Numbered from the stretch's first letter, positions 33,719-56,000 are shown. The stretch is 64,000 bases of DNA from Entomortierella parvispora E1425 (GCA_020891255.1 BQFW01000013.1:1674001-1738000), one strand, 5' to 3'. The notes: generated by a model not told the origin, from the sequence alone. Numbers and translations: made by a program.

Positions 33719-34399
33719 AAGGAAACAACCATAACCATCCGTCTTCTTATCATCTCAAGTCGCCCTCATGAAGGAGGTTCTCCTACTCTAGTCTAAAATA
33801 AAAATTGTACAATACAACATGACACATTCACTGATATCTTGCTATTGTCTATTCTGCTTTCTATCCACCGCATGCTGGACCATCAATCAATCTTTTGGTG
33901 AGTGTGGATCAGAAAATTCAAAGAAAGAAATTTTAATAGATTTTTGATTCGAGATGATAGTGTAATATGGGTAAAATGTGGAGGTGCTTCGTACGGGGGT
34001 GCTTTTCTCTCTCTTCTTTTGCAACGTAAGAAAGTGGGGGGGTAGGTGCGTAAACTCTTTGCCCCCACAAGTCCATCGTGTTTTTGGGAGTTTTTACAGC
34101 GTCTGTCACCAAAAGACAACATCACGTGGTTAATTTCCATGTCTACGGTTTCAGTAATTTGGGATAAAAATTTAGGATATTGCGCTTTGCACCTAAAAAA
34201 AAATAAACTTGCAGATATCATGATGATAAAATGAAACACATTGAGCAGTCACCGCGATCAATCTTGAAAACTGCCCGCCAAGACCTGCACCTCTTCGTTT
34301 TTCCTTTCTTTCTTTCTCAACTCACCCACCATCCCCCCTCCCCCCAACAACAATTACCGAACACCACTGCCCATACCTTGACCTCAAGAACATACTACT

Positions 34400-36150
34400 T
34401 ACGCTGCTCTGCATGCAAGTCTCGCTGTCCTAATGGACTTGGAGCCTCTCGATGTTATCCAAGATCTTGGAGATCGCAGTGCTCATGGTTTGTTGTCGAG
34501 AAGTTTGCTGTGATATGAGGACATGACGGCCTCCAGTTGCTGCTGGATAACAGGTGCCACAGACGTTACGTTTCTGCCATCAACTTTCTTAAAGGCCCGA
34601 AACCTAATACTTCACTCTTGAAAATAGGGTACTGGGAAGATTTGTTCTCGGCCTACAGCACGACGGCGGCGTCCTGCAAAATGTTTTGGCAAGTGGGCAA
34701 GCAGATGAAGATGTCATCAGTGCGAGATTGCATCATCAGAGGGAACGTTCCGTGCAGCCATTTTCTTGATTTTTTTTTTTTTGACCTTGACTTCTTCCTG
34801 TTGGTCCGTAGAATATACTTCGATCCAGCATGGTGTCGCCGATAGTTTGGATCCAGAAAGGGTCGCCAGGCTTTGTATCCTCGGGATTTGAGCATGCACG
34901 TTCAATGAACGGGAAGTCCATGCGCTGTAGCTCGAGGTCTGAAATGACATCACGCGCCATTCAAAAGTTTTCCGATCGGCCATTCTCAAATCCGGCCATT
35001 TACAACGCCACCGACGCGTCGACGCCGTCGAGGTAATGGGTGATGAGTCGGTTTGTCGCGCAACCACTCTGTTTCGTTATATCCTCGTTCCTGGCACCAG
35101 TCAGCGGCGCCAAAAAAAAAAAAAAAAAAAAAGCACCCAGGCGTCGACTGAAATGAGTTGCTTTGTCTTTCAATGTTGAGATAATCCTGGATGTAGCATG
35201 TCGGCTTGTACTGCGTGGCGTATCGCATCTCTGATGTTCGTAAGGCAGATTTTGACAACAACTGGTAGTTGACCCAGTCGTGATTTCCTATGCAAGGCGG
35301 AGGGGCAGCCGATGACGAAGTAGGCTAGCGCCAGATAATTCAGATTAGAAAGAGGTAGAACTTCACCCAACTCATGAAATGTACGTCGTGATTAAAAAGT
35401 TCAAATTTACCAACCAATACTCAAGCAGAAAAAAAACTGGAGCACCGACAGGACACGCCTCCACATCTAGGTTTCGTGCCACGACATTGTATCGGATCTT
35501 GCCATCCTTGCTCAACAAAAATGACTGCATCGTGCTCTTTGATCCAACTTGTAGGGAATTTGGCTTGATATCGGTCAAGGTTGCGCGCGTCTTTGCTTTG
35601 ACACCTCTTTGCTGTTCGCGCACAATTCGCATGTACGCCATCTCTTTCTGCCTTAGATCCAGTTCATGAACTTGATGTGTCTTCTTGGCCTCGCGGAACT
35701 GCGCGACAAGAGAAGTAATGGGGTGGTGCTTTTCGTGGATCTTGTTGTCCTGACGCGAGCTCGGACGCGTCGAGAGGAGAATCCTGCAGATAAAAAAGTC
35801 ATGTGTAACAACGAGCATGAATAAAGAGGTTCCATGGGATACTTGGTACTATCCATTGCGCCGCATGCAGCAGCTGCAGCAGTCAAGCTGAGCGTTACAC
35901 CAGACTTATATTGCGAAGAGTCAACCTGTTGGGTGTTTGCTGTTGATGTTTTTGCTGGTGCTGTTGATGCTGTTCCTGATGCCGCTCCTGGTCCTGTTGA
36001 AACAACTGACGCTTGATCGTCTGAGGAAAGTGATCCAACGGTGGTGTTGTGGCAATGTGGGTTGTATGCACGTTTGACCCCTTTGTGTGCTTTTCGTGCC
36101 TTCTCGGGGGAGCCAAATATCCAAACGAGCAGCATCGATGCAGGAAGAAC
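34400..36150 (-). mobile_element. Decayed Crypton (tyrosine recombinase, NDC10-II-like) transposon gene
   Basis: Ordered fragments: KRAYNPH, KDGKIRYNVVARNLDVEACPVGAPVFFLLEYW, YATQYK, GAADWCQERG, CHFRPRA and ILQDAAVVL*..YPIF. These match fungal Crypton motifs (RHxDxxxCPVGAxAFY, YFLPRA, LQDAA). Stops and frameshifts present. Confidence 0.7.
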
Positions 36151-36394
36151 GTCCAAAGTGGCTTAGGCGATCTGGGTCTCATCCACGACAGGCACACAAT
36201 GGACCAAGGAACATGCGAGACAGGCCTTCGATCAGAGGGAGACTGATCGCTCGAGCGGGAAGCGCCTTTTCAGTCCCCTCTCTCCCTTCCCTCCCTCCTT
36301 CTCCCCGCATCCCTTTGACTATTCATCTTGTGGACCCTGCTATTGCCATACAGCCTCTCGCTCTGCTTCTGCATTTTTCAGTCATCCCACAATA

Positions 36395-39300
36395 ATGAAC
36401 GAAGAGTACCAACAGATGCACGGTGGCCCAACACCTATGGAGACTGATACTGACCATGCGTATCCAGGAGTGCCAGTTGAGGTATGCTTGCACTCGAAAC
36501 CCTATTATCGTCGTAGTCCTACAATGAACGAACTCGCCTTGCTCATGTCCAAACCTTTGACCCTCTAGACGGCTCTGACCTTCTTGGACGACGCCACCTT
36601 CATTGATACTCTTAATGCACTGCCTCCCATTCAACCACCGAACCACGAGCTTCAAAATCGGGTGAACGCCCTACTATGGGATGGACATACAACACCCAAA
36701 ACAAACGAAACCATCAAGCAAACTTTACATTCCCTCCAGAGGTCGTACGGTCTTGTCTTGGACGAGGAACCTGCACCTGCTACAGCTCTCGTTGTCAACG
36801 TGATGAACCGTAAAGTCCAGACGAACTTCATTCTAAGCTCCAGCGCCGGCGACGTGGTCCTCCCCCCCTGCAGACTCCTTTTGAGGAGACTCGCTCGACT
36901 TGTTAATACGGCTATTATAGTCATATCCTCGCGCTCAAAAACACATGTTGTACGACCAGAAGGGGACGCCGCAGATCAGGAAAAGCTGATAGTTCTTTTG
37001 GATTTGGCCGAATCATTCAGAAGTCTGCGGACATACGTCCCTCTCACCTGTTCCATAACAGAGCCAATTCCTCTTCCAGTGCAACTTATGGCATCGTCGT
37101 CTATCGCCAAGGCAGAGTACATGGATTATGCAAGAGAATACACTAAGCATGCCTCTGTGGAGTTCACTGCAGCTCTGGCAGAGCACTGTTTCAAGCAGAG
37201 CTGGTAAGTTTTGAATTAACTGGTCAAGACATGTGGTGCCCTTGAACATCGATCATTGATCCATTTCCACCCTGAACCTTTGTAGCAAGGCGACCCTGAA
37301 AGGCAGAACCAAACCTATCGTAGCTGCAGCCTTGAAAAAGGCAGAGAAAGCAACGAGTGAGCAGGATCGCGAAAATACTATGGCTAAAGCTCTTGAGGAC
37401 TTCAGGAAGAAGGAACGAACATGCAAAAAATCGCCCCGTCATCTTGTTGAACGCGCTATCTCGATACTGGAAACAAGCTGCAAAGATCCAGACGAAGACG
37501 AACCTCCTAATATCACCCAAGAACAGTTTGATGAGAAAGTCGACAAAGACAAAAGGCTCGTGCTGTATCACAATTTCGTCGAGGGTCATTGCCACGTTCT
37601 CTGGAAGGAGGTGGTTGATGCAAAAGAGGAAAACGAAGGCGATGATGAACCTGACGACAATGGCAATGGCCCGACAGTGCCAGAGGGGAATGAGAAAAAC
37701 AAACCAGACATAAGGGTATGCCAAGTGCCCTTACAGAAGATACTCCGCAACGACTTCGACTTTGACACGAAAGGCACCATATGTGAGATTTTACACGAAA
37801 AGCAGCGTTTGATGTCGAACCACATCGACGAGATTCAAGTGGCGATATTGAAGGCTCATATAGAGGTAAGTCAAAACTAGCCTGGTGTTTGATGTTCTAA
37901 TCTTTCCAAGCGAAATTTAAACTGATATGAGCGTCTTCGTCTTGCTATTTAGATATTCCGGGGTCGACTCTTTGGGACGATGACCAGTGTTGACATCTCC
38001 ACCATTCTTCCTGATGGTTTCGAGATACGAGATGCAGATCTGAAAAAGAATCCAGTCATCCAGCTCGCCAACGTCACCGAGGGAATCTTGGCAAGGTTGG
38101 CTGATACTCAGAAGGACGACGTATTTAGCACCGATCTTCGAAACATTTTCAGCCAAGCTTGTCTGCAATATATGGCGGTGAGGCTCGATACAACAAAGCA
38201 CTCCAAAACAGGCGACCACCCAGTCTGGGACCATGTTGTATCACTCATTAACGAGACATCTGTAATGGACGATGCTGTCAGTTGCCCTACAGGAATGTCA
38301 CAGTCCAGGACCGAGTTATTACGTACCATGGCGACCAACATCTCCAACATCTGGTCGGGAAACATTTACAGTAATTTGAAGAGGCACGTTGTTCGCTACC
38401 TTCTAAGACTCCACCTGAGACCCCTGAGTGAAGAAAGATACCGCGCACTCAAGAAGCAAAAGGCAGAAGAAAAGCAACAGCGCCAGGCAGTTCGCCAAGA
38501 GAAATCAAGACTGCGCCCGAAAAGACACTGGCAAAAACTTCGGTCACTCCTGGACCAACTTGACAGGGCTGTGACATTGTGTGCAAAACGATGGTCAGGA
38601 TCGACGCTTGTCCTCTCACAATCCGTATCTATGGATAGTAATGAAGACGACGACGACATGGGCGAAAGTCACGACGATGGTTTCTGGGACGATGGTTTCT
38701 GGGACGATGGTTTCTGGGACGATGGTTTCTGGGACGATGGTTTCTGGGACGATGGTTTCTGGGACGATGATAGCGATGATGACACCCGAGTTTTGCAACC
38801 GCGCACTCAGCGGATACAAAAAGTGCTTCACTTGATCCACAGACAAATTGAATTCCTTGCGTCGCCACTACCAACCTCGCCCCAGTTGGGTCTCTTTCAA
38901 GATACTGATTCAGAAGATTCGGAAGAAGAAAACGACGAGGACGACGACGAGTATGATGGATTTTTACAGATGCTGGAAGAAGACCATGACCCTGATCTTG
39001 AAAAAAACCATGACTCTGATGGAGCAGCAGGGGGTAAGTTTGCTGAAACGAGGCATTGTGTTTTTCTACGTGCAACAACTAATATTTTTTTTTTAAAAAA
39101 TCTGTTCACAGATGACAGTTATAAGACAGAGCCCAAGTCAAAATACCTCCGTGGGCTAGAAGCAGTTACCTGTTATCTGGTGGACACGAATGATCCCCCA
39201 AATGAAATTACAACCGCCGATCTACGTCGCCATCTTTTCAAAGGAAAAAGCTACAAGGACAACGAAGTTCAGATGGCAGTATTTGTTGCAAACGCACTGA

Positions 39301-41651
39301 GACCTTTTGCTCCCAGAAAAAATTCTGGAGGTCATATCCCGCACCATATCCTCGCAACGGGCCCTTTCGTCTACCTTTCGAATCAGTTGCTCTTCGCAAT
39401 GGGGTACGGCGATTTTGCGAGGAGAATATCTCCAGTGTCCTCGGTTGGGAAAATGCACCCCATACCTCTCAATGCCACCGGGATGTATGAGACTCTCTGT
39501 TCCAGGGAGGAATACCATTTCGATGTCAGAGCCTTGAACAACAAGGTCATACCGGATCGCAAAGCTGCGAATCATAGCCCGGCAATCATGTTCGGTGCGT
39601 TCTTCAAAATGGATGTGGTCCATAAAACATGCTTGGAACACGGAATGATATTTGCGAACCGGTAAGTAACGCGTAGAGTATGTTCATGAAACGATCGACT
39701 GCACTCTCGGGCAAGTGTTCTTACCATTTCACAAATGTGCTCTAGATTTGATTTTGTTGATCCAAGCACGGTGAAAATAATTGGGCATTCTATTCGGCGG
39801 TATGCACCTCTAAATCAAATCGAGGTCAAGAAGGGACGCCAGAAAAACAACGAAAAAGGGCAGCATCAACCATCTGAAGCCCAACTGCGTCAGCTCGATC
39901 TTGTAAAATCCGGTCTGTCAAAAGATAGGGCGAGTGAACTCTCAGCGAAGCTGGCAGAGGACATCGACGTCTATGATAAATTTATCAAGCAGCAAAACCG
40001 GGAATTGGCGTAGGCGGAATGTCGACTACGCTCCTTAAAGGCTACTCTCAGGGATCTATCGTCAGATAAAGGGAACGATTTCGACGAGACCTTCAAAGCG
40101 ATGAAAACCCAGCGTGACCATGTGTATCAGCTCCGTCAGAACGTTATCCCCCTGAGAGCAAATATCAAAAATTTGAAACAGCAAAAGTACGACTACGACA
40201 AGTTCCAGCCTCCATCGGCGCATCAGCGTAGACAGATGGACGAGGACAGCAGCAGCTCGACTCCAGTCTTCACATCCAATCCATCAATTTCACGCCCTGG
40301 TTGCATGGACAAAGCCGAATCAGTGAACATTAAGCAGTTGGTCAGCGACATCGACGAAAATAATGAGCGCGTCAAGGAGGGAGGGCACGGAAAAAAAATC
40401 ATTTTGGTGCCAGGGGGGACCGACCCTGGAGTCCGTACCATGCTCAACACCGTCCCGGTCCCAGAAGGAATGTTGATTTCTTTAAAGGGTCGATTCGACA
40501 AGATGACTGGCTTTCTGGACACAGTCGATGTTGCCGTACCCCAAACGCTTGAAGACATTCGATTTCCCGAGGCCCATCAGACCACGGCCTCACAGATCCG
40601 GCACCACTCTGGATTGAATGCCCAAGCACGCACAAGAACAAGACGACTCGCCAGAAATGATAACGTAAAGAGTGCGTATAGTGCGCTGGCAGAAAGTTCT
40701 TTTCGGAGAGCAACAACTGCAGAACAGATTGCAGAAAGGCAAGGCGTCAGACGGGATAACAGAGAGTTGGTTCGAAGCTTTGAGTATTCTGAAAAGGCGC
40801 GCAATATGAACCACCACAAGGAGTTACGTTTGAAGAGTACTTACGACCGCTTTGCAGCCAAAGAACGAGACGCGTTCAGACGGCATGCACATTGTAAGCT
40901 CATTTTTTTGTGCGTTGTTGGGAACATTAATTATGAAGTCTAAACTCATTTACAAAACTGGTTAGACAACGACGCAGGTCCAGTCGCGCCCTCGGTATCA
41001 GCATCTTCTGCTTCTTCCGCTCCGACTCTTGTCATAGCGGAAAACGGATACTGCAACTCGTGCGGCACTCACCACTGGCCAGAGCTCTGCGTTGACGACA
41101 GCATCGACGGAAAACGACTTGTACTCCGGCATGTGCAAGTTTGTCCCAAAGTTAAGCCGCGCGTGATTCCACTGTATCTCCACGGGGCAGCGGGGACAGG
41201 AGTTGGATCACGGCTAGGTGGTCACACGAGGATGGGCGGGAACAATATTCAAGTGCGAAACATGGCCCATGGGCCCGTGTGCGTCACTAATGAGCACAAG
41301 TCTTCGTGCACATGTTGTTTTTGCTTCCATCCGGTGCGCCTAGCTAGAGCAAGGCGTCAAACAAAGAAAGGGCTCAGACTGGTACGCGTCAACGGGGCAA
41401 TCGAATGCTACAACCCATCGTGCGTGGCCTTTCGCGTGGGTTACACAATTCGTGGTCGTGACACCAATGCGGCAGTTAACATAGCCCTGGCTGGATACGC
41501 GTTGCTCCACTCAACTGATCAAAGGACGTTAGCACCCTTTGATCCACGGCGTCCTTCTTGGACCCTTCCCGATGGAAGTACCAGCGCGAGCTCATCGAGT
41601 GAGGTCAATCCCCTGCAAGAATCTGAAGTCAGTCATGCGAGCCGAATTTGA
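36395..41651 (+). pseudogene. Giant Fanzor/TnpB-like RuvC nuclease, copy A; 7 exons, about 1588 codons, one in-frame TAG at 40011-40013
   Basis: Exons 36395-36481, 36569-37203, 37286-37865, 37953-39033, 39112-39661, 39746-40893 and 40966-41651 total 4767 nt. RuvC-I GTDPGVRTM, RuvC-II TNEHKSS, Zn finger CCFC..CYNPSC, RuvC-III RDTNAAVNIALAG. Confidence 0.85.
38673..38762 (+). repeat. Perfect 15-bp coding minisatellite (GACGATGGTTTCTGG)x6, encoding DDGFW x6
   Basis: Seen directly within Fanzor A exon 4. Confidence 0.95.
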
Positions 41652-41700
41652 ATCCGCGCCAAACTATGCAATCAGGAGAGAACTCGACTCTATGTAGTAC
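41550..41700 (+). ncRNA. Candidate omega-RNA scaffold of Fanzor A (limits unknown)
   Basis: CTTCTTGGACCC motif shared with copy B, then hairpins CTTCC-cgat-GGAAG and CTCA-tcgag-TGAG. Position expected for Fanzor omega-RNA; inferred. Confidence 0.35.
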
Positions 41701-42149
41701 ATTTTAGTAAATTTGTTGCAGCAACCACACATATCCAGCTCAGTTGGGTCCATCTTTTCATGTTGTATGGTCCACTGTCACGGTCACCTGTCACGGTCAG
41801 ACAAGGCAGGAACAGGAGAGAGAGGGCAAGATATAGCTTATTGTGAATCATAGACTGAGGAGCACAGCAATAGATCAAGAGGGGTTACAAACTAGAAAGT
41901 TGGACCGCGTCTGGAAGCAGTGAAATGTTTTGGTACTCACAAGAAGTAATCGGGACAAAGTGAGGATCTGGGGTGATCCCTCTGGTTTAGCACGGTTTCT
42001 GTCATCTTACTTTATTGTGGTATCTGACATGCCCGCTTAACCTATACATAACAATCCACCCTGACTCCGGCTGCGACACAGTGCTGGCCATGCAGGAACA
42101 GAGTTGAAAGGTACCACGAACTTTCTGACTGCTTCCCGCGTCTTCTTAA

Positions 42150-42700
42150 TCCATGCATTGGTGGGTGTGTGGACTGTGGGCACACGCCATAGTCAGGAGA
42201 GGAGAAGAGCCATGGCTATGGTCGCGCGTCCAAGTGTCGAAGACTGTCGATCCGCGTACATCCCAATGTGCTCCTGTAAATAAAGTCTTCCGCTGTTTGG
42301 TCATCAGGGCTATAGGGTACCCGAGGTAAACCAGCGCGCTTTCGGCTTCTTTGTCATAGATTCGGACCTGGTCGTCGAGAAGGGCCTGTCTCAGTTCTGG
42401 TTTGAATGTTGGGAGAGAGGTAGAGTCTCCAGGTATACGGATGTACTCTATCTTCTCCGAAATCCACGTCTTCCATTCCTGGGGATCCATACGCCGTAAA
42501 GTGTGATGATGATTCAGTTCCTTGGGAGGATCGCGTGAGTAGATAGGAGTTGGAAGAATTGTAGAGACAGGAGGGATAAGGGATGTGGAGTCCCATGCTG
42601 CCCTTGCTCCCAAGAGAGCGTGCACTGCACTGTCCTACGTCAATTTGGACTGTATCCATATCTAGGTGGATTGGTTCTAGGGTAAGATAAATTGACGAGA
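42150..42700 (-). pseudogene. Decayed non-LTR (L1/Tx1-like) reverse transcriptase fragment
   Basis: DPQEWKTW..RIYDKEAESALVYLGYPI resembles the RT domain 6-7 YLG motif of fungal LINEs; upstream frames are broken. Confidence 0.45.
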
Positions 42701-44439
42701 AGTAGATGTCAGCATTCAGTAGTAAGCTGCAGTCCAACACCCACTGTGAGCTTGGAGTTGAGTCGTTCTGTTGGTCATTGTCAGAGGGGTCGGTGTTGTC
42801 TCTTGTAGCGCCTGTACATCCACCCTTGCGCTCCTCAGGAATCTGTTGCCAGAGTGGTTCGAGTTCTTCGTGTCCAGAGTACGTGCAATAGGTGAAGCAA
42901 TTTTCATTGTCGCCTCCACCTGTCGTTGAGGTGGCGCATTTCCAGCCTGGTGTTAATTCCTGTTTGAAGACAGGTGCGAAGCCGTCTTCTCCCGTAAGGG
43001 AAAGTTACGAGGTGGTTGTGGGGTGGGACTTACAGCAGGATGAGTCTTTTGTGCAGATGCGATTCCAGAGTCTACACTCCTTGGCAACGGTCGATGTCGC
43101 ACTTGAATCTGAATTAACGGCCGATAGGGTTGACTGAGGAAGCGTGGGTCACTAAGCCCAGAGCCCCAGGGATGTTGGTCGCTCCTGTAGCTACAATATC
43201 CTCCATATCCGACTGTTGTCTGCCTCTCTTGTCCAGTTCACGTTCCCAGTGCGCCGGGGGTTTGCCTTCCCGACTGGTTGTTGAACCACTCACGCGAGGA
43301 TGCGGAGGTGAAGAGGACCAACGTCAAGGATATCGACATGTAGTAGTAACGTCCTGTCTGCAAAAGGTGATGTTGGCATCGAATGGATTGGGACAAAAGC
43401 CATGTAGCGCGTGTCCGAATCTTTGTTCCCTGATCATATTGTATTGTGACACACCGTGTGATGTCCATACGGCGCCCGAACCATAGAAGTCAGCGAGAGC
43501 GACATGACATGCCATCAGCTGGAGGCTGAATGCCCATTGGCAACTTGTATGTACGTAAAGTGGCTTCGCATTTAGTCACGTGATCTATACGTACGTTGGC
43601 TACATATAAGCGCTTTTTTTGCCACCAACGACAGTTCTGAACCTTTGCCTCTCCCCCCCCCCCTCCCCAACAACAACAATCCCACCACACTTAAACACAT
43701 ATATTCAGACACACCTACACGTACCAGTAGCTGAAGGAGGTCGACGTGAGGAGAGGAGGGAGAAGAGGTACGTGTTCTGCTCTTTTTGGAAGTTTTGTAC
43801 CAAGGAGCCTTGCTAGAGGCTGTTGCTATTCTGTACCTCGAGCATCCATACTGACTTTCCTTCGTCTCGTGAACGATCGTCCTTTGCCTCCTTATGTAAC
43901 CTTCAGGTTCGTGTAAAAGCTTTGGAGAACAAAGGCAGTGAATCGCTATGGACCGAACGTGGTCGTTAGACCTTGTCTTTTGCGTTGGTGCTGTAGAGAT
44001 GGTCACTCAACGTTCACTTCTCATCCTGTCGTCATCTAGACTCCATCAGAGACCTGCGTGATGCGGTCTCTCCTTGCGAACACGAGTCTATTTGCAGTTT
44101 GCATGTTCGTTCGAGAGAGTTTGATCATCACTGATCCTTTGATGGGCACATGATGATCCAAAGCTAACTTCCACCCCCACCCGCCACACTCTAGACTTGC
44201 GAACATACTTTGCGTATATTTTTTGCGAACAGGCACCATTCTTTGGTCGCACCCCCGAACGAACACCAGCACCATAGGTCTGGATCAAAACCTTCCACAT
44301 GTATCGCGAGTCGATCCCATGTCAGGAATTGAGTTCTCTCTCAACTTATGTAAGTATTCTCAGGTCAAATCTGCTTTCTGTCTCGTCAATTACAACTGAG
44401 CGCCATATTAATAAATTTTCTCTTGGTCATTTCTACCTG

Positions 44440-44545
44440 ATAGTCTCAATAAAACTATTCAACTTACCACTGTAGCCTCGTTTGAGGAGTAGCACTTGAT
44501 CCGCCTCGAATTGTGCTACGTGTTTGGTGGGGTCCAGAAGCTGGC
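44440..44545 (-). ncRNA. Candidate omega-RNA scaffold of Fanzor B (limits unknown)
   Basis: Minus strand: CTTCTGGACCC (44530-44540), stem GTAGCAC..GTGCTAC (44489-44519) with an inner TTCG/CGGA helix, and hairpin CCTC-aaac-GAGG (44476-44487) just before the stop codon. Confidence 0.45.
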
Positions 44546-47500
44546 TGGTGTTGATCGATTTTTTTTTCTGGTACAAGATATGGGCGGAATGGCGCCAAGG
44601 GGATCCTGTCGTCATCCTTGATCGCAGAATATCCTGATATTCCTATGCATACACAGGCTTGTGTGTCTCGCGGCCGAGTCGTGTAGCCGTTCTTGTAGGC
44701 AGGACATGCCGTGTTGAAACAGACTTTGGATCCGTTCACTGTTACTGTGTTGATGGTCCTGCCCTTTTCTGACCCCACAATTCGCCTTGAACGCGCCGAG
44801 TGGGTTTTCTCCAAGCAGAAGCAGCACCGCTGTGTTGACATGTACTCATCCGTGACTACAACAGTCCCGACCTGACGATGTTGCTTCCTGATGTTCTTAC
44901 CACCTAGGCGATAATGGCCACCAATCCTGGATCCAACACCAGTGCCAGCTGCACCCATAAATATCACATGGCGGACGACCGGGGTTGTCTTGACACAATG
45001 CGTAGGATGCTTATATGGAGCCTCGATGCTGGACTTGGATATCTCGATGCAACAACAATTGGAGCAATAGCCAGAAGCTGTGTCCACGCTTGGTTCACCA
45101 CGTTTGTCTTCGGCCAATTTGTTGATGGTGTACTCCGCAGATTTTGCTCGCAAATTGCTTGCGACTTTGGCCCAGGCCCGTTTGGTCCGATGCCTACAGG
45201 TACGACGGAGTTTCACAAGATCACGATCCCTGTTCAGCTCTCGTAGGCTGTTGTTTTCAGCAACCGAGTCGCGGATCTTGATGGCAATCTGGACGGATTC
45301 GATGGTTGAGGCCGTAGCAAGAGATGCATCTGGATCCGAAAGTTTCTCCAGATCCGCCTTGGCTTGTTTGTGCTTGTCGGTCTCGAGCAAGCGCTCCCGT
45401 TTCCGACGAAGTTTGCGGCCAAAAGAAATGTCCTCTACTTGACGTGCTGTTATTCGATGAGCCTTCGGGAGCTTCATCTCTTGTGTGGCTTTTTTTGCTT
45501 GAATGCGCCTCTCCTTCGTCCAAGGTTCAGTAGTAATGTCAACCAGCTCCTCCTCTTGCTTAGAATAGTGCTCCTCCGGCGCAGCATGTTCAGTAGGCAA
45601 AAAAAGCTCCTCCGTTGTATCAAGATCTACATGCAGGACATGAAAGATAGTTATTAGCATCAGGATTAACAATGTGTCAGAAACATTTGGACTACGACTA
45701 ATAATTTTGTAGAACTTACCTGCAAGAACTTGGAAACGGTTCATTGACTTTTCAATTCCCTCGACTGTCAAAAAGACGTTCTCCGACATCACTCGTACGC
45801 CAGGGTCCTCGCTACATATCGCCACAACCTGGACCCGTTTGGACCCTGGTAATGGTTTGAGATGTTGGTCAAATATTGGCTTGAGGTCCAATCGTTGCGG
45901 GATGTCCTCTGCTTGCGGCCATTCCCAAGAAGGAGAGGTATGGGAAGGGTCCGTTTTTCTTGCCTTCAATTTCTTCTTCGGGTTATCCTTTGGCGCCTTT
46001 CGCTTTGCTATGGCCAGCAGTCGGTTCCAATAGTAGAGCTCTTTTTTGGCACGATCCCAGGCCATATCCAGCTGACTAAACCTCCTTTCCTTGATCCTAA
46101 GTATTGCCTGTTGTGCCTTGAGTTCAGACATTTGTTGTTTTTTCAAGGTGATGTTGCTCTCATTGTTGCTGATGGTCCAAGGGATTGCCCTGATGCCACT
46201 ATTCAACGCGTTGCATTCTTTCCGAAGAGCAGCAAGCTCCTTGCGAGGGCCTTCCCGTTCCTTTGCCGTAAGCTCAACTTGTTTCGTGGCCAGTTCAACC
46301 TGATGCTTGACATCGTCCTTGGACATGCCTCTGCTTTCGAATTCCTTCCGCCAATGTGCATTTCTTCCGTTTTTTAAGCCTGAGCCCGCCTTCTTGCTTT
46401 CTTCGAACGCGCTATGGACAGGATGACGGGTATCGGACTTGGTCGTCTGCGGTCCCGATAAGTTGAGAGTATACTGGTCCACAAAGGTCATCCTACACAG
46501 TTTTTCAGATACGGACATCAGCTTTTTTTCCTCGTCTAAACTCAATTGTTGCTCATAACAGTGCATGAGGTGTGTACATACCGCATGCCAAACGTAAACC
46601 CATGTCTCTTGCATATGCCTTCAATTTTCTCGATGTCGAAAATGTTTGCAAACACTACCCGCTTTGCATTGAATGACGCAGTGCAGTCAGCAACGTTGGT
46701 CATGATGCCGGTTGCACCATGTAGGTCATATCGGCCGGCGCTCTCTCCACTTAGCACTTGGTAGAGATGACCAGCGCCCAGCTGTAAACCGTGGATCTTT
46801 CCCGAGGAGATAGAGGGAGAGAGTCGTCTGGTGAACTCCGTTTGGCCCAACAACCGCAGCACCGCGTTGGAGATGAGTACAATTGGAGCGCGCAGGACAA
46901 TGTGTGGGGTATGATGACGATAATCCTCATCTTCAGCATCCCTCCAGCGGCGAGGAACATAGGGTCGCAGAAAATTAATGATCTTCTGTGCGACAAGGAG
47001 TTGCCGTTCAGTAAAGGAGGTTCCTTTGTATAACGAGTCCTTGATGTGATCCATGCTGAACGTTGGGGTCGGTAACGGGGACTCGAGCAACGTCCTGACG
47101 ACGGTCTGCAGACGCCGAAGGGTCTTTCGACTCGGTTCCTTCTCCTTGAGGTCAGAGTTGAGAGTAATCGGACTACTTTGACTTGCATCATCTACATCCA
47201 TGACCCACTCCGTATCGAGTTCGTCCGCGAAGGCTTGACTCTCAAGGAGGCACATATCGAGATCATCGTCTGAAGAATCCTCCTCCGAGAACACGTCTTC
47301 CATACTCTCATCATAGGCCAGGTCAACATCCGACGCTGAAAGTCCAGCCTCAGAGATCCTCTGAAATGACTTTTTGGATTCTTTATCAGCTTCTGGCGGC
47401 TTTGTATCGTAGAGGGCCTGGAGCGGAGCAACAAAGTGATGAAGCTGATCGGTGCGACCACTCGAGTAATATTTCGCAACTTTGTTCAGAAGCTTGCTCA

Positions 47501-49581
47501 TGGAGTGACGCCAGTGCGATCGACTTGGTTTGTCCGAGCTGGAGTCTTTGGTGGCCTTTTGCTCGTTCTTTTTCTTGACTGCACTTGACTTCCGCTCCAT
47601 ATGTGCCGCCATTCGATCCGGGGCCAACCAAGCCGATAAAAGATAGCGCAGGAGATAATCAAGAGCTTTTTCATAAATCTTCCCTTCCCACAAGTTACTG
47701 ATGGCGGTTGCGCATTGACGAGTATGAGCCTCGACAACTTTGGAGTACCGGTCTTTGTGGGGGGCGATCAGACCCGGGATCTTACTGTCGATGGTCTTTG
47801 CCAACTCTAGCCATTTCGTATGATTGCCAGACTCCTTCGCTAGCCAAGTTTTTCTGCGAGCTATTGGATCCTTTTTGAACTGTGTGTAGAGTTGGCTCAG
47901 GTGGTTTTGTGATAGAACATTGCGGATGTCGCTATGGAGACTAGAGTTCTTGTTTTCGATGTCACTCTGCAGTGCGACTATTGGTGCCACGTTAAGTATC
48001 CTTTGTTCAGGCGGGATGATGCATGCTGATGGTAAAATATCGCCCAGGCATAGGGTACCCTGTTGCCCTGAGAAGACACCGCCTGCTATCTGCAATTCAA
48101 TAACAGATGAAGAGTATCAGCATCAACTTCGATATATGTAGTACAGTGCTACAACGTCAGACTCTGACATCTAGATTCAACTCACCAGGATCGTTCCAAC
48201 TTGTGCCAGGAGGTAGAGCGACTGTTCAACGTCCGTTAAGTGATCCTGTGCTTCTTGAAGAAGACTAATAATTCTGCTAAAGTCTTCGTGGTTCGAAAGA
48301 CCGGGATGAAGGGCTTGCTTCATTGTGACCGTACATGTTCGCCATTCCTCAGTGTTCTCGTCATCGTCCGCAGTGTTGGGCTCAGGTTCCCTTCCTTCAT
48401 CTGGACCACATTCCTTTCTCTTCTTTCCTTTTTCAGCCTGAAGTTGGTTGTCTGCCAGACTCTGCTCGGAATTTGTCCAGATTTCGTCAAACTGTCTTTG
48501 AACAACCTCGCACCAAACACGAAGATTGTTGTTGCTGGTAGCTGCAGTGATGTCGCTGACGACCTGCATACGCGTCAAAGACTGGTTCCTTTGTTCGATG
48601 TATAAAGCAGCGGCATCGCTTAGGGGACCTCTTGGAAGACTCTTTAGATTGGAAAGTCGGGTTTTGAACTCTTCCTTCCCTTCGTGGTCCTCTTTCTTGA
48701 TGCTTTCGCAGATATGGTCATCAATTTTTTTCTTCAAATGCTCGATACTAAGAGATACAAACATGAACAACGTGCAGTCAGTCATTAAATGTCTTTTTGT
48801 GAAATCACCCGCATAAGCTTCAGCATCAGTATCAGTCTTACCAAGACATTTCCAAAAATTCCAGTAACTCAGCTTTCCTAGTGTCGTCGGCACCACTCCT
48901 TTTGATACGTAGTCTTTTGTTGGCCCGGAAAGTTGCCATGTTTGTGGGTAATATAACAGCATTGGATGAAGACATTTCTTCGCTTGGTTGCGGTAAGGCC
49001 AACTCGCTCGCAGGAGCAACAGCTAGTTCCTCCAACAAGTCTACTGTGTCCACTGGAGCGAGGGCCAGAAATTCGGAAAACTTAAGGTAGGAATCCACTC
49101 TGTGAAAGATTCCACAGACTGAGGGTGGAGACGATGCCTCTGTCCTGGGAGAGAATGTCCTCGGTGCGCCTCGGCAGAAAAACAAAAAGATATTGCAGTT
49201 GAGTCTGTCTGCCAGGTAGACAAGCAAGAGTTGCGTTCTTGTGGGGACGATCATAGTCGAGTTGGTGCTGTTGACTGTAAGGTGCAAGTCGTACTTACCT
49301 CCTGGCCTCAGAAAATGTTGGATTATGAAGTGGGCTAAGGAGTTGTTTGGGTCTGCAGGATTGACATCAACACGGAGTCCGCAGCTTCGAAGAGCTAGCA
49401 AAGCTTTCTCAGTCTGTTCTCTACAAGATTGTAGTCTGATGTCCTTGGCGGCATTTTCCAGACGAAGTCTAAAGTCGGATGGCGGCAGAGACCAGGAAGA
49501 CCGGCGACTTTTGACAAGCTCGGTGAAGCTTTGAGGTGGGTCGGTACCAGGGCGCGCGACAATGTTGAATGAGAATGTCAT
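44464..49581 (-). CDS. Giant Fanzor/TnpB-like RuvC nuclease, copy B; intact, 5 exons, 1581 aa
   Basis: Exons 49581-48842, 48747-48186, 48089-46582, 46492-45720 and 45626-44464 total 4746 nt with no internal stop. RuvC-I SEDPGVRVM, RuvC-II TDEYMST, Zn finger CCFC..CFNTAC, RuvC-III RPRDTQAC. Confidence 0.88.
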
Positions 49582-50068
49582 GGCGATGGTATAAATGGTT
49601 GCTGATTTGGACGAGGTTCGAGTCGAGCGAGTGAATAGGTGCAATGTATGACTGACTGAATGAATGAATGAATGAGAGACGGGTGAAAGCAGTGGAATGG
49701 AGCCAAGGACGCGTTTTTACGTGGTCGTGGATGGATTTGGCTGACTCCTGAGCCACCACTCCTGATTTTTTCAGAGTGAGATTAATGTACTCTCAGTTAA
49801 GGGTCTGTAACACACACGCTTTTATTGCCAATGTCACATTGCGCACCAACTACTTTTGTCAAGAGGACATCATAGTCTTATTTATTGTCTGCAGTCGCTC
49901 AAGTGTATGAAGCATTTTGAGCTTCAAGACCGCTCTTACAAAAGATATTAGATTTTCAAACTATTTGTCGGGACTAGATGACTTGCACCATAGAATAAAA
50001 TATAGATTAAGATTATTTTTTTTGGGGTGAGGAGGAGGAACAAAAAGGCGGGTCAAAGAAAGTCAGTT

Positions 50069-53000
50069 TTAAGAACGTCCAAAGTAGACCTCACGAAGAG
50101 TCTCGTGGGCAAAACGTCTCTCGGGGTCAACCTCCAACAGACCACGGATGGCCTTGCGGGCATCCTCTTCCCGGATGGTATCCAAGGCGGGCTCGAACAC
50201 AGTCTCCTTGTTCGTCAACTGGAACTCTGCAAAGTTGCTGGCCGAGAAGTAAGGCTTGCCGGCGTGCAACTCGTACAGGATCAATCCCAAGGACCAGCGA
50301 TCCATGGAGACAGCCGACAAAACATTGGTAGAAGACGATTCGCGTCCCTGCAAGATCTCAGGGGCGGCATAGGTGACGGTCGTGACAGCGGTATCGACTG
50401 GCTCACCGACAAAGCGGGCGTGACCAAAGTTCCAGAGCTTCCAGACCAATTGACCATTTCCATCCTGAGCATCCTCACCGGGGACACCCTCGAGGTAGAA
50501 GGAGGCAGGGCGGACGTTCAAGTGAACAACATGGTGCTCGTGGCACCAGCGGAGGGCATCGGACAGGGACAAGGTCAATTGACGGATCTGGGCGCTCGAA
50601 AGTCTCTCAGTGGCCATGTAGGACTCGAGGGTGCGGGAGAATGGACCCAAGATCGAAACGAAGCGGTAAGAGGCAAAGGTAGGCAGGGAGTACAGGGTGT
50701 AGAGATCAGCAATGTAACGGTCCGACTTCAAGTGCTGGAGCATACCGGCCTCACGCTTCCAGTGAGCCTCAGTCTTCATCCACTTGATAGTGCGACGAGC
50801 GGAGATCTTGACCTCCTCAACGTGAGAGAAGGCAACATCATCAATGTTGACATCACCAGCGCCGAGCATCCTGAACTTGGAGAACAAAACGGTGCCAACA
50901 GCAGCCGTGGGGACGGCCTGGTCTGCATCGCCACGCTCGTAGCGCATGATGCTCAACTTGAGGGTGATCTGGGTTCTGTTCGCGGCCTGTTCAGCAGCAG
51001 TCAAGGTGCCTCCTCCAACAACACGGGTTGTGGTCGTGGTCTGGTGGTTGTTGCCGACCAAGGTAGCGCCGGCTCCAACGACAACGGCACCTCCGGGGAT
51101 ACGGAATCCACCCTCGGCAGTGCGCTCAACAACGGTGCGGATCTCCTCGCCGTTGGGTCCATTTGTGATCTGATAATACTTGGTCTCTCCAGAGGAGGTC
51201 GTCTCGGAAACAATGCGGGTCTGGGTCGAGGTCGAGGGTCCTTCGGTGGTGACAGTGCCTCCACTGACCATACGGGTGGTCGTGGTGACATTTCCAGTGA
51301 TAACAGCGCCAATAACCTTGCGGATCTCACCAGTCTCAGTGGTCTCCTCAGTCACGTAGCGCAATTCACCCTCAGGCTCCTTGACAGGGATGTGGACCAT
51401 CTCGCCAGTCTCCTCGTTGCGTTCAAACTTGGTGCGAATGGCATTGCCGTTGTACTGGTCAACAATCACGTAGCGAATCTCGCCGGTGGAGGTGCGCTCG
51501 GTCACGATGCGGGGGCCCATGATCACACGAGTGATCGTCTTCGTGGTAATAACAGTTCCAATGATGTAGCGGATCTCACCAGTCTCGGTGCGCTCCTGGA
51601 TGACATGACGGAGCTCACCAGCCTCATCATTAGTGGGGATCAAACGGATCTCTCCAGTAGAGGTCTTTTCGGTCAAGACGCGGATGGCATTACCGCTGAA
51701 TCCGCCGGCAATGATGTAGCGGATTTCACCGTTAGAGGAACGTTCAGTCACGATCTTGGTAGAAGAGGAAACGGTCGAGATGGAGCCTCCGGGGATGACA
51801 CGGACACTGCCAGATTCGGTGCGCTCAGTCGTGGTGCGGTCCGTGCTTCCGGCAATGATGCCTCCAATGATGTAGCGAATCTCACCGGAATCGGTGCGCT
51901 CCTGGGTCACATGGCGGAGCTCACCGGTGGGCTCGTTCGTGGGGATCAATCGGGTCTCTCCGGTCGAGGAGCGTTCAGTAATAACACGGATGGCATTTCC
52001 AGTGAATCCACCAACAATAATGTAGCGGATCTCTCCGGTCGAGGAACGTTCAGTCACAATCTTGGTCGAAGAAGTCATGGTCGAGTTACCGCCAGAAATT
52101 ATACGGGTCGTGGTACCAGTCTCAGACTCGGTGCGGCCGGCAATAACATGGCGGACAACGTTGACACCAGTTCCAACAATAAGACCTCCGATGATGTAGC
52201 GGATAATGTTGCCATGTGCATCGCGCTCGGCAACAACCTCGCGTTCCTCGCCCTCGGGGGAGTCAACGGGGACCAAGATGTCCTCTCCAGTCTCAGAACG
52301 TTGGGTGATCGTGCGGACAGTGGTGGTTCCAGGGATAATACCGGTCAAGACATGACGAGGCGCACCAGTCGTCTCATCATGCTCAGTCACAACAGTGCGG
52401 CCGCCGGTACCTGTGGTAGTGTACACGCGGCGTCCGTTTACAACACGAACAGTGGTCTTGGAGGTAATGATCTTCTCCTGGGACTCGCTGCGGTGTCCAG
52501 CAATAACGCCTCCAATAACGCCAGCAGCGACACCTCCGAGGAGGACATCGCGTCCAAGATGGCTGTTGCCTCCAGTGATCTCCTCAGTTGTTGTGGTCTC
52601 GGTCGTTGAGGTGTTGCGACCTCCAACAGGGATAATGCCGCCAGGTCCAGAGGGCTGGTGAGTCGAGTCATAAGGACTGGGTCCACCAGGAACAGGAGCA
52701 CCACGACCGTTGGTCGTTTCGTATTCGTTGGAAGGACGGCCTCCAACAGGGACGGGAACAGGGACGGGAGCAACATGTCCGTGAGAAACCTCCTCACGTT
52801 CCTCCTTCTTCTTGTGGTGAGCAATGGCACCGATAGCACCAACAACTGCAGCGCCACCAATAATCTCGGGAATATGCGAGTTGTGTCCAGCAGGGGGGAC
52901 AACACCAGAGACGTTAGGACCGCCAGGGAACGAAGAGTTATCAGAGGGTCCACCGGGGAAGGAAGAGCCACCAGTAGGTCCTCCAGGATACGAAGTGGTC

Positions 53001-56000
53001 TCACCTGGGCCACCAGGGCCATAGGGACCAACAACCTCTTCCTTGTCAACGACAACCTGGTTCAGATCGTCATCAGTCATTGGGCCGAGAGGGATCAGAG
53101 GAGGGAGTCCTCCGCCATTGCTGGGAAGGTGACCAGCAGTGACCTCTTCAGGACCGCCGTGGCCGCCAGCACCAGCAAGATACTCGCTCTCGCGTCTCTT
53201 GCGGCGAGCAAAGAGGAACATGAGGGCAATCAAGCAAATCAGAGCCACACCTCCAATGATGCCTCCAACAATAGCACCAGTGTGGTTGTCACTTCCGGAG
53301 GTCTTGGAACCATCAGGAACGCCAGCAGGGCCGGTAGGAACAACACCGGCGCCTCCCGAAGTTGCAGTGCCGATAGTGGCGGTAGGAGGGATAAAAGAGG
53401 GGCCACCGGATGGGGGACCAGTAGGGATGCCGGTGGGCAAGGGAGGAATCCAGGTTCCTCCACCACCACCACCACCACCGGATCCACCACCGCCAGATCC
53501 ACCACCGCCAGATCCACCACCGCCAGATCCACCACCGCCAGATCCTCCACCGCCGGATCCACCACCACCAGATCCTCCACCACCAGATCCACCGCCACCG
53601 GATCCACCACCTCCAGATCCACCACCTCCAGATCCACCGCCACCGGATCCACCGCCACCGGATCCTCCACCACCAGATCCACCACCACCAGATCCACCGC
53701 CACCGGATCCTCCACCGCCAGATCCTCCACCGCCGGATCCACCGCCACCGTTGTTGCCGCCAGTGGGGGGAACAAAGATCACAGTGGGAGGAGAGGAGGT
53801 GCCTGGAGGTACAGGCTCGCCGGGCTGAAGGTTGGTTGAGCACTGGTCGGCGCTGTCACAACCACCATAGACAATGATGCCGGTACCGCAGTTGGCGACA
53901 GTGAAGTTGCCGGCGATAGGGGCACCCTGGGAGACTGGCACGATCGTGTAAGGCTCGGGGACAGTGGTATCAACTTGCCATACACCGACACCGACGTTGT
54001 TCTATTCATAGGCGAGAAGATTAAAAAGATAACGGTTAACACCTTGGTTTGGTGCCACCACGAATGCATCTTATCGATCGTTCTTTTGTTCGTATCAACA
54101 AAATGAATAGAGAAGGGAAAAAGAAACCAAGTCTTACCTCGCCAAAGATCCAGATGGAGCCGTTGTACAAGGTGGAGCGAGGGTTGTTAATGTGCATGGC
54201 TGGCAAGGGCTGGCAGTCGCTCGTGGTCTGGACGGGTTGGTCCGAGGCCGAGGAGGCAGCGGTGATATCGTACCAGCAAGAGGACTTGGGTCCGAAGAGG
54301 AAGAAGCTCTTGCCGGTCAAGGGAGCAGCAGCCAACGTCATGTCAGTAGGAACATTGCTATGGTTTGGGAGAGAAAGAGAGAGAGGCATTCAATCAGTAT
54401 CATTGATAATTTGGCTTCCAAACAACCACGTAGAGCCTAAAACTTACGTGGTGGTAAGCTGGCTGCAAGAGTGAACGGTATCGTTCAAGAGTTGGATGCC
54501 AGTCAAGTGACCAACACCCTTGGTATCCTGCCACTGGACCAAGAGGTCATCCACCAAGCCAGTACTGTCCTGGAAGACGGGGGCGAGGTTGTTGGGGTAG
54601 GTCAAGTCACAGCTGATGGTCTCATAGGTCCAGGTGCGAGCCCACTGGTTCCAGACGGCGATACCTCCCTCAAACTGAACACCGAAATGGTGGTTGGCGG
54701 TCAAGAAGCACTGTTCAGTGTAGTAGGGCTTTCCACCGCCGGGGTAAGGCAATGAGGTCCAGATAGAGGTGGTCCAGTTGGCAGAGCAGGTCGACTGCTG
54801 GATAAAGTTAAAGACAATGGCGCCTGTGGAGTCATAGCCGAGCATGTAGGTTATGTTGTTGACAGAGTCAATGACCACACAGGGCTTCTGGAGCACTGGT
54901 GGAGGTTCAGGGTGCCATTTGGCGGAGCCAAGGAGGTCGCCTAGGGAAAATCAAAATAAAATCAAAAATATGATAGGGTAAGCAAAAGTGACATGGGAGC
55001 AGAACGAGGTAACCCTAGCGGGCCACATATCATGGGAGATGGCGTGCACAAGGTACCACAGAATGGTAGGAATGAAATTGCAAGGACATTCGAGAGCACC
55101 CAGGTGCAGGGGATAATCAAAGCAAAAAAGAAAATATAAAAAAAACAGAGAGCACTTTTCGAGCGGGAGCAGAAACAAGAGAAGGGCAGGATGCGGTGAG
55201 CCTGAGGAAGAACACGACGAGTGATAGAAGAAGAGATGATGAAGGTGATGATGATCGAGTGGAGGGTTAAGGGTGAAGACAGGGACACGGACGGCCCCAC
55301 ATTCCGGACACGCGGCCGCCGACATGACAGCCCAACAAACAGGCAAATAGGAACAAGAGCATGAAATGAGAGAAGGAAACGCGAACCACACGCGAAGAGA
55401 AGAACCGAAAAAAGGGAAAGCCGATGAAACACCGCAACGAAGCCCGGTTGGTGAAGAACAGTGTGCCTGTTTGTGCCTGAAAAATAAGCACCGAAGAAAA
55501 TGCACTTTTTATCTCCTTGTCGTTTGACAGCCAAGAAAGAAAAGAGCGCTCTTTCGCAAGAATGCAGGCATGCAAGGGTAGGGGGTGAGGCTATCCAGGC
55601 TGGATGGGGAGCACTTTTACGATGGGGGAGAAAGAAGGGCCCAAGGGAACGAGGGGAAGACCATAGAGAGGGGCACACACAGGCAGACACACGCACAGGG
55701 TACATCGTAATGTAGGGGGCTGCCAGGTGGGTGAACCTGTCCAAGTGTTGTCTGGTGCAACGACAGATGTGGTCGAGGGACAAGACAAAAAAAGGGACAA
55801 AGGGGAGCGGGTGCACGCCTGACGCCCACCCACAGCTTGTTTGTTGTTGTGTGCACAAGGATTCATCCTCCTATCCTTGATCAGGAATAGCGCCCAGACC
55901 CCAGTACGAACACAACAACAGCAATGCTGGCAACGGCTTTGTTCGTATTATCCGTTTATCAGGACATTCAGGAATGAAGGGTAACAGGTGCGATAATGGG

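Follow-up and report, generated by a model that had tools for sequence, protein, structure and literature searches.

Gene structure and nuclease core

The stretch of DNA analysed here, a 64,000-nucleotide segment of the Entomortierella parvispora E1425 genome (GCA_020891255.1, BQFW01000013.1:1674001-1738000; hereafter the window, in which all positions are counted unless another locus is named), carries a gene for an exceptionally long Fanzor-like protein, which we call the giant Fanzor. The gene lies on the minus strand, as do all features of it and of its mobile unit described below, and runs from an ATG at 49581 to a TAA at 44466-44464. It is divided by four introns of 89-96 nt, all canonical GT-AG, whose removal leaves 4746 nt, that is, 1581 codons with a single terminal stop. 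The initial annotation had described an intact, intron-containing gene for a protein roughly twice or more the length of characterised Fanzors. In agreement, the spliced frame is open, and the predicted product of 1581 amino acids (aa) compares with 600-700 aa for most Fz1 proteins (PMC11423790).

The splicing model, as predicted, rests on homology. It joins four open reading frame (ORF) pieces (48838-49644, 48177-49019, 46542-48095 and 44464-46614), and the proteins of relatives align without a break at all four exon junctions. Exon 1 (48842..49581) encodes residues 1-247, the last codon being split by intron 1 (48748..48841; GTAAGA..TAG, 94 nt), across which relatives are continuous. Exon 2 (48186..48747; residues 247-434) is followed by intron 2 (48090..48185; GTGAGT..CAG, 96 nt), whose junction VGTIL/IAGG aligns with ELLVLASG of the Actinomortierella homologue P0005. 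Between exon 3 (46582..48089; residues 435-937) and exon 4 (45720..46492; residues 937-1195, comprising a REC-like coiled coil and RuvC-I) lies intron 3 (46493..46581; GTATGT..TAG, 89 nt), and the resulting FGMR/MTFVD sequence is continuous in the relatives P0001 and P0002. Intron 4 (45627..45719; GTAAGT..TAG, 93 nt) is in frame and contains no stop codon; the annotated Entomortierella protein P0001 has a gap precisely at this position, and in the model the read-through sequence forms a loop of low confidence. Exon 5 (44464..45626) encodes residues 1195-1581 and the TAA, and holds the RuvC lid helices, RuvC-II, the zinc ribbon, RuvC-III and a disordered tail. The segment 49298-49209 could be read as a fifth intron that keeps the frame, but it aligns as coding sequence with relatives and was therefore left in the exon. 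An extra exon beyond the GTAAGT at the stop codon was discarded: its contribution could not exceed three residues, and only ~15 nt separate this point from the end of the repeated unit.

Sequence and predicted fold together identify the C-terminal ~400 aa as a Fanzor1-type RuvC/zinc-ribbon nuclease with intact active-site residues. The D-E-D triad and zinc finger named in the initial annotation are all present and nearly invariant in the family. The RuvC-I aspartate, D1166 (EDPG, 1165-1168; 45805..45807), sits at the end of model strand 220-229, where the family consensus reads GxDxG. The RuvC-II glutamate, E1455 (TDEY, 1453-1456; 44845..44847), is conserved in at least 90% of 35 relatives and aligns to the DEY of SpuFz1. 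In RuvC-III, the catalytic D1515 (RPRD, within RPRDTQ 1512-1517; 44665..44667) marks the start of model helix 608-625, and its R-D pair, nearly invariant, reaches the same 90% or more in the 35 relatives. The zinc ribbon, or TNB domain (44704..44826), is built from C1462, C1465, C1497 and C1502 in a CxxC ... Cx4C arrangement (CCFC 1462-1465 and CFNTAC 1497-1502), all four cysteines being nearly invariant in the family; the Cx4C form of the second knuckle also occurs in SpuFz1 (GCTNPNC). A motif published for Fanzor and TnpB proteins, D-X(125,275)-[TS]-[TS]-X-X-[C4 zinc finger]-X(5,50)-RD (Bao & Jurka, 2013; PMC3627910), is matched, except in its first spacing, by S1458-T1459-Q-R-C1462, the C4 finger and a gap of 11 residues to R1514-D1515.

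Single-sequence searches gave little. Pfam and NCBIfam returned no meaningful match for the window's own exon translations, PF07282 staying below threshold; phmmer with exon 5 found only noise among PDB sequences, and a related-locus search in a prokaryotic contig collection gave no match to the giant Fanzor. Several relatives have weak PF07282 matches in Pfam, and an exhaustive profile search recovered 1075 family representatives at E <=1e-3, 167 of them at E <=1e-30. The comparison by profile and by structure that the initial annotation had proposed pointed to Fanzor1. When a profile of the RuvC-II/zinc-finger/RuvC-III region (35 members) was compared with 177,635 PDB sequences, it matched SpuFz1 (E 5.6e-5) and PpFz1 (E 0.015), with no other entry below 0.8 and Cas12f next at noise level. 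The alignment to the two Fanzors pairs DEY.TS..C..C, V.G...C.NP.C and RD. With a profile of the whole domain, SpuFz1 was the sole match in the PDB that is not a coiled coil. An AlphaFold model of residues 938-1581 (52 relatives; predicted local distance difference test (pLDDT) 80, predicted template modelling score (pTM) 0.80) shows the RuvC/TNB fold, and Foldseek ranks PpFz, SpuFz and GtFz best (probability 0.99-1.0), followed by Cas12 variants and Fanzor2. VIA-align gave a Z of 12.7 to both SpuFz1 and Cas-phi over ~250 residues of RuvC/TNB, and about 10 to Cas12f. The assignment to Fanzor1 thus draws on the PDB profile matches, the fold of the model, and the near-invariance of catalytic and zinc-binding residues.

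Added domains, family and selection

The 1581-aa protein aligns end to end with GenBank "hypothetical proteins" from Actinomortierella (P0005, 1584 aa, 31% identity), Mortierella sp. (P0006 and P0013) and M. alpina (P0003). Many of the best 150 of the 1075 family representatives measure 1300-1900 aa, and all ten family members whose source was looked up belong to Mortierellaceae. By sequence comparison, the whole layout is therefore a trait of this fungal family and not of the window alone. The initial annotation had proposed an uncharacterised clade. No paper with this architecture was found, which leaves that claim standing in part, but the proteins themselves are already deposited as hypothetical proteins: their architecture is undescribed in the literature found, and a literature search returned no paper linking Fanzor to Mortierellaceae, to OTU or to this layout. 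Among the rows listed, the supplement of Saito (2023) has a single Mortierella Fanzor, an ordinary one of 677 aa; large Fanzor surveys could contain members of the giant clade.

The selection check proposed earlier was made against the E. parvispora copy L001, whose protein is about 64% identical to the giant Fanzor. The ratio of nonsynonymous to synonymous substitution rates (dN/dS) is about 0.1 along the length, at about 0.07-0.19 in every region with estimable dS, with dS saturated; the lowest value, 0.07, falls in the RuvC region. The low ratio along the length argues that the added parts are under purifying selection too. A second Fanzor gene in the window, Fanzor A (37947-41546, plus strand), lies tail to tail with the giant Fanzor gene. 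This paralogue aligns with residues 433-638 and 744-1543 at about 24% identity, rising to 45% in the nuclease end, and retains the canonical motif RDTNAAVNI. Its reading frame also contains seven tandem copies of the 15-nt unit GACGATGGTTTCTGG at 38658-38792. A sister subfamily in Mortierella sp. GBAus27b counts at least nine near-identical copies in one genome.

The layout of the N-terminal part was read from a model of the first 1200 residues of the homologue P0005 (pLDDT 76.5), used in place of the window's own protein. In this model an alpha/beta module (N1) is followed by a helical segment, an acidic disordered stretch and a 300-residue helical domain, and then by another acidic linker, also disordered, an alpha/beta domain predicted with confidence, and a long coiled-coil hairpin ahead of RuvC-I. 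The hairpin is REC-like and spans roughly 130 residues (about 102-residue helices). Transferred to the window, N1 would cover about residues 60-200 (48982..49404), as placed by the homologue model and the family alignment. A conserved helical domain, N3, would cover about residues 383-640 (47472..48341), beginning at the family motif RTCTxTLKQ and spanning intron 2; fold searches with the homologue model, where its pLDDT exceeds 90, found no structural relative. It is followed by an acidic, probably disordered linker at about residues 641-743 (47163..47471), indicated by its sequence and by a pLDDT below 50 in the homologous segment, and by the conserved alpha/beta domain at about residues 744-936 (46584..47162; pLDDT about 95 in the homologue). 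The latter is 73% identical to L001, which makes it the best-conserved part outside RuvC, and aligns with the paralogue Fanzor A; its position before the coiled coil suggests that it corresponds to the WED domain. The motif RTCTxTLKQ had also been considered as the first WED strand of a TnpB core, an assignment that was dropped when the model made it helical. The unusual length noted initially holds up, and an OTU-like part has moderate support, but the roughly 900 aa of extra sequence were not all added at the N-terminus: a portion is an expanded region between the N-terminal modules and RuvC-I, made up of the alpha/beta domain and the coiled-coil hairpin. Pfam found no XPG/FEN1 domain, either in the exons of the window or in twelve full-length relatives.

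The fold of N1 has moderate support as OTU-like. In P0005 it occupies residues 99-222 with a pLDDT of 84-92, and comparison with ESM-Atlas OTU clusters gave template modelling (TM) scores of 0.47 over 107 aligned residues and 0.34 over 123. Foldseek placed Otu2, TYMV PRO and OTUD2 at probabilities of 0.72-0.75, with E about 1. When the entire 1200-residue model was searched against the PDB and AFDB Swiss-Prot, the coiled-coil hairpin dominated and only weak OTU matches appeared besides; ESM-Atlas feature searches with exons 1 and 3 returned uncharacterised Mucoromycota clusters only, or scores of about 0.5. The motif FH.VDSY, including its histidine, is conserved in the family. Where OTU proteases have their catalytic cysteine, in contrast, the window has a serine (PNNSLAHF, against the OTU motif DGNC) and the family is variable, and Pfam finds no OTU domain (PF02338) in exon 1 at E up to 1. 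Since this cysteine is not conserved, N1 appears OTU-like as a fold and is probably non-proteolytic. One distant family member, P0116 from Gryganskiella cystojenkinii (KAG0050570.1, 1902 aa), does carry a canonical OTU domain at residues 282-400, with DGNC and HY intact; it alone passes the Pfam gathering score (23.6 versus 23.3 bits), and its true OTU is a separate insert after an N1-like segment. The OTU-like module of the initial annotation is thus retained as a fold and not as an active protease.

Both basic tracts that had been proposed as nuclear localisation signals (NLS) are present, and they differ in merit. PKKKLKARK (1108-1116) lies in a loop of the model and may serve as an NLS, whereas RKLRRKRER (1265-1273) is a poor candidate because it forms part of a confidently folded helix of the RuvC region.

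The mobile unit and its 3' end

The giant Fanzor gene is the only gene of a repeated mobile unit of about 5.55 kb (44449..49994), which consists of the gene, a 413-nt 5' region and ~15 nt past the stop codon. At its left end lies a 30-nt block, TCTATGGTGCAAGTCATCTAGTCCCGACAA (49965..49994), that is identical in L001, and between this block and the ATG is the 5' untranslated or promoter region (49582..49964), partly conserved with L001: a stretch of about 140 nt (49864-50001) matches L001 3582-3721 at 75% identity, and the remainder of the 5' region is not conserved. Copy number and boundaries were read from assembler contigs of sequencing run X1. There, a 5290-nt contig covering 44704-49994 has a depth of 342, compared with 70 for the adjoining single-copy contig, and five different single-copy contigs (depth 70-78) meet the unit at 49994-50001; this indicates about five copies in the run, which bears on the copy-number check suggested initially. 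The other copies differ from that of the window at 28 sites (0.5%), and all share the left-end block up to 49994. On the right, a second copy matches as far as GAATAGTTTTAT (44449), with divergence beyond that point and a loose end at 44476. Homology to L001, which has different neighbouring genes, spans the same unit limits. In one of the ~5 copies of X1, the last 191 nt of the ORF (44468-44660), including the conserved RNA structure described below, are swapped for 29 unrelated bases.

The unit also varies between strains. A 10-kb contig of strain X4, which carries the same species label, runs from 50250 to 49991 and continues with 30 nt matching window positions 34064-34093. Strain X4 thus lacks the 15.9-kb island 34094-49990, which by position holds Fanzor A, other repeats and the giant Fanzor. 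This island looks like a strain-polymorphic nest of mobile elements beside a TCTA site. Runs X7-X9 and X11, again under the same species label, contain next to none of the unit's words. The TCTA itself (49991-49994), the first four bases of the left-end block, is present in the empty site of X4 and precedes every copy; by analogy, it is a candidate target motif or target-adjacent motif (TAM).

No transposase lies inside the repeated unit, in line with the absence of an adjacent cognate transposase noted initially, and we found no terminal inverted or direct repeats of note around the gene. The left-end block was not found upstream of more distant relatives. In the GBAus27b subfamily, three copies are 98.5% identical over 5.45 kb and contain the gene only; their 5' end is fuzzy or differs, and their 3' end is sharp, 166 nt past the stop. 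Helitron-like ends (5' TC, 3' hairpin plus CTRR) were considered for the window unit and do not fit its right end. The unit is a recently active element, specific to Mortierellaceae and devoid of terminal inverted repeats.

Several features of the surroundings stand apart from the unit. The DNA beyond its right end (44210-44453) is a separate repeat with a depth of about 1300-1500 in X1 and X4, and it is therefore present also in a strain that lacks the giant Fanzor. Upstream, a minus-strand ORF of 1290 aa (50069-53941) combines a long GGGGS run, many TERxxTGEIR-like repeats and a kinase-like C-terminus, and its stop codon lies 75 nt from the left end of the element. L001 carries about 1.4 kb of extra DNA between the left-end block and the ATG (L001 3722-5330), with two copies of GAAGACACCCTTCCAA..TTTTTTATTGACAA, probably a small nested insertion.

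At the 3' end of the gene, the last ~90 nt of the ORF contain nucleotide blocks common to six members of the giant Fanzor subclade (the window, L001, L005, L007, L008 and L009), from which the RNA alignment was made. Without an input structure, RNAalifold predicts three hairpins for these six sequences (44467..44558, overlapping the last ~30 codons) with 19 pairs, eight of which show compensatory double changes. Paired cells amount to 94.7%, compared with 78.8% in shuffles, and covariation reaches 0.47 versus 0.15 in shuffles, a value attained by 0 of 500; controls with slid partners stay at or below 0.12. The structure includes G-U pairs and consequently fits the sense strand only. It ends a few nucleotides before the stop codon, about 20 nt inside the right end, and Rfam gave no match on 41-51 kb. 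The candidate omega-RNA of the initial annotation thereby gains the backing of covariation in six relatives, and on these comparative grounds the three hairpins are probably a good candidate for an omega-RNA scaffold. SpuFz1 uses a 75-nt scaffold followed by a 14-15-nt guide beyond the conserved part, and omega-RNAs that overlap the ORF end are known from GtFz1 (17 codons) and ISDra2 (PMC10432273). By analogy with SpuFz1, the flank just past the right end (44434..44448) would be the candidate guide position.

Two further observations concern the 3' ends of the family. In every subfamily examined, the stop codon overlaps with, or is immediately followed by, a hexamer resembling a 5' splice site, namely GTAAGT, GTATGT, GTAAGC, GTAAAC or GTATTG (window 44462-44467; L001 10520-10528; L005 8462-8470; L007 6838-6846; L008 4179-4187; L002 11181-11189). 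In the GBAus27b subfamily it opens what looks like a complete intron (GTATGT..CACTAAC..ACAG) within the 3' tail, and the unit in the window ends too early after the hexamer to contain a 3' splice site. The 166 nt past the GBAus27b stop (L002 11184-11349, also L003 and L004) are 100% identical in three copies and fold well (z -3.67); this tail ends in the hairpin CCCGTGA-GCAA-TCACGGG followed by CTTTCAGCTAG, recalling a Helitron 3' end.

Proposed mechanism, alternatives and known systems

We consider it likely that the giant Fanzor, the sole gene of a ~5.5-kb mobile element, is an intact Fanzor1-type nuclease that works with a 3' scaffold RNA and a guide read from the flank. A transcript of the 3' end would fold into the three-hairpin scaffold overlapping the last ~90 nt of the ORF and would run past the right end (about 44449) into the flank, which would supply the guide. 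The complex of protein and RNA would then enter the nucleus and cut guide-matching DNA beside a short motif, for which TCTA is the candidate. As in TnpB and Fanzor, guided cutting could favour retention or homing of the element.

Several observations weigh against this interpretation. For the WED/REC half, no structural match to solved Fanzors was detectable, and RuvC-III of the giant Fanzor reads RDTQACVCI where RD.NAA.NI is usual. The spacing from D to [ST][ST] is 291 residues, 16 above the published range of 125-275 (PMC3627910). Taken alone, the 3' region of the window has only a small folding advantage over shuffles (z -1.45 and -1.86), and the covariance model R1 found its six source sequences only, neither Fanzor A nor the GBAus27b subfamily; the hairpins might also be cis-acting transposition signals instead of a guide scaffold. 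Finally, the 3' boundary of the unit is fixed to within about 15 nt, and the contigs behind copy number and boundaries come from X1, which is possibly the same sample as the window.

Two alternatives concern the nature of the gene. The 1581-aa protein could be an artefact that joins two neighbours, of which the N-terminal one would have no known function and the C-terminal one would be a normal-sized Fanzor, and GenBank does annotate L001 as two genes of 595 and 785 aa. We hold this to be very unlikely, as many independent annotations give single proteins of 1445-1823 aa that align end to end, every junction is in frame with canonical introns, conservation continues uninterrupted across the proposed break, and within the repeated unit there is a single 5' region and no gap between genes. 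The initial annotation had also allowed for a domesticated RNA-guided system, that is, a single-copy host gene of Fanzor descent with a cellular function. The intact frame, purifying selection over the full length, N-terminal domains conserved across genera and a unit without transposase would all suit such a gene. About five copies at least 99.5% alike with different flanks in one sample, absence from X4, the near lack of the unit's words in X7-X9 and X11, the different gene neighbours of L001, and a sister subfamily with at least nine near-identical copies in one genome nevertheless speak so clearly for mobility that we abandon domestication as scarcely credible.

Other alternatives accept the mobile element and question how it works. 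The protein may no longer be an RNA-guided DNA cutter and may instead be a DNA- or RNA-binding factor, or act through its N-terminal modules only. Nuclease-dead derivatives of TnpB exist and offer a model for this; the derived RuvC-III and flanks of this subclade (RDTQACVCI) and the large added domains, which suggest extra functions, point the same way. However, the three catalytic residues and the four zinc ligands have all been retained and are nearly invariant in the family, dN/dS is lowest (0.07) precisely in the RuvC region, and the conserved RNA structure is found where one would expect it, so that we view loss of cutting as quite unlikely. Of somewhat greater weight, although still improbable, is the idea that the hairpins are cis-acting right-end signals, as single-stranded DNA (ssDNA) or RNA, for a recombinase acting in trans, such as a Crypton tyrosine recombinase, or an element of mRNA 3'-end processing. 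The hairpins are close to the right end, at about 20-110 nt from it, and IS200/IS605 elements, which use subterminal hairpins in transposition, set a precedent. The hairpin and CTAG that end the GBAus27b subfamily, like a Helitron 3' end, the splice-site-like GTAAGT that each subfamily examined has at its stop codon and the published association of Fanzors with Cryptons (PMC10530073) fit this idea as well. Yet the G-U pairs match the sense strand, the left end yielded neither a matching hairpin nor an inverted repeat, and the window unit's own end has no CTRR motif. Moreover, the omega-RNA of TnpB and Fanzor is itself encoded at the right end, so the scaffold and signal roles are not exclusive.

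Characterised Fanzors are compact and reside in transposons that are mobilised by other enzymes. Here, by comparison, a recently active element carried across a whole fungal family has as its single gene a Fanzor of more than twice the usual size, with added domains that are conserved and under purifying selection. One of these domains is OTU-like, one relative carries a real OTU deubiquitinase domain, and a candidate guide-RNA scaffold is embedded in the coding sequence. A further-reaching possibility, which we regard as unlikely, is a self-sufficient single-protein RNA-guided element with no separate transposase, in which the pseudo-OTU would act as a ubiquitin-binding module and, with the helical domains, would couple cutting to ubiquitin-dependent repair or chromatin, or would provide integration. 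If the added domains did tie RNA-guided cutting to ubiquitin signalling or DNA repair, they would be a natural counterpart of the fusions made by genome engineers, and would bear on the role that a Fanzor plays for its element in the eukaryotic cell. Direct tests are possible, given an intact protein, a right end and a candidate scaffold mapped within about 15 nt, a candidate motif and a known empty allele.

Among known systems, the giant Fanzor most resembles Fanzor1, represented by SpuFz1 of Spizellomyces punctatus (PDB 8GKH) and PpFz1 of Parasitella parasitica (PDB 9CF0). The giant Fanzor and Fanzor1 alike have a RuvC domain split by a zinc-ribbon TNB, a D-E-D triad and the motif DEY.TS..C..C ... 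V.G...C.NP.C ... RD with its unusual Cx4C second knuckle, and both are eukaryotic, intron-containing and transposon-carried. Unlike Fanzor1, the giant Fanzor has ~750 aa of N-terminal modules (OTU-like, helical and acidic linker) and a long coiled-coil hairpin before RuvC-I, and its WED/REC half lacks a detectable structural match to solved Fz1 proteins. Its scaffold candidate is almost wholly inside the ORF, with ~15 nt after the stop, its unit has no terminal inverted repeats, and PF07282 stays below threshold.

TnpB of IS200/IS605 elements (ISDra2) belongs to the same nuclease superfamily and likewise sits in an element without inverted repeats. Its scaffold is encoded across the 3' end of the nuclease ORF and stops at the right end, as the candidate scaffold of the giant Fanzor would, and a short motif abuts its left end and is kept in the empty site, a part that TCTA may play here. 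In contrast to the giant Fanzor, which is four times longer and whose unit has no transposase, TnpB is bacterial, measures about 400 aa and is accompanied by the TnpA Y1 transposase; no TnpB chain was matched at the sequence level, either by phmmer with exon 5 or by the family profile against the PDB. The OTU cysteine proteases (PF02338; yeast Otu2, TYMV PRO/DUB) share the alpha/beta fold predicted for N1, with a serine at the catalytic cysteine position in the giant Fanzor. Cas12 enzymes (Cas-phi/Cas12j and Cas12f) share its RuvC/TNB fold, with sequence similarity at noise level (E 0.8); unlike them, the giant Fanzor is eukaryotic, transposon-borne and free of a CRISPR array.

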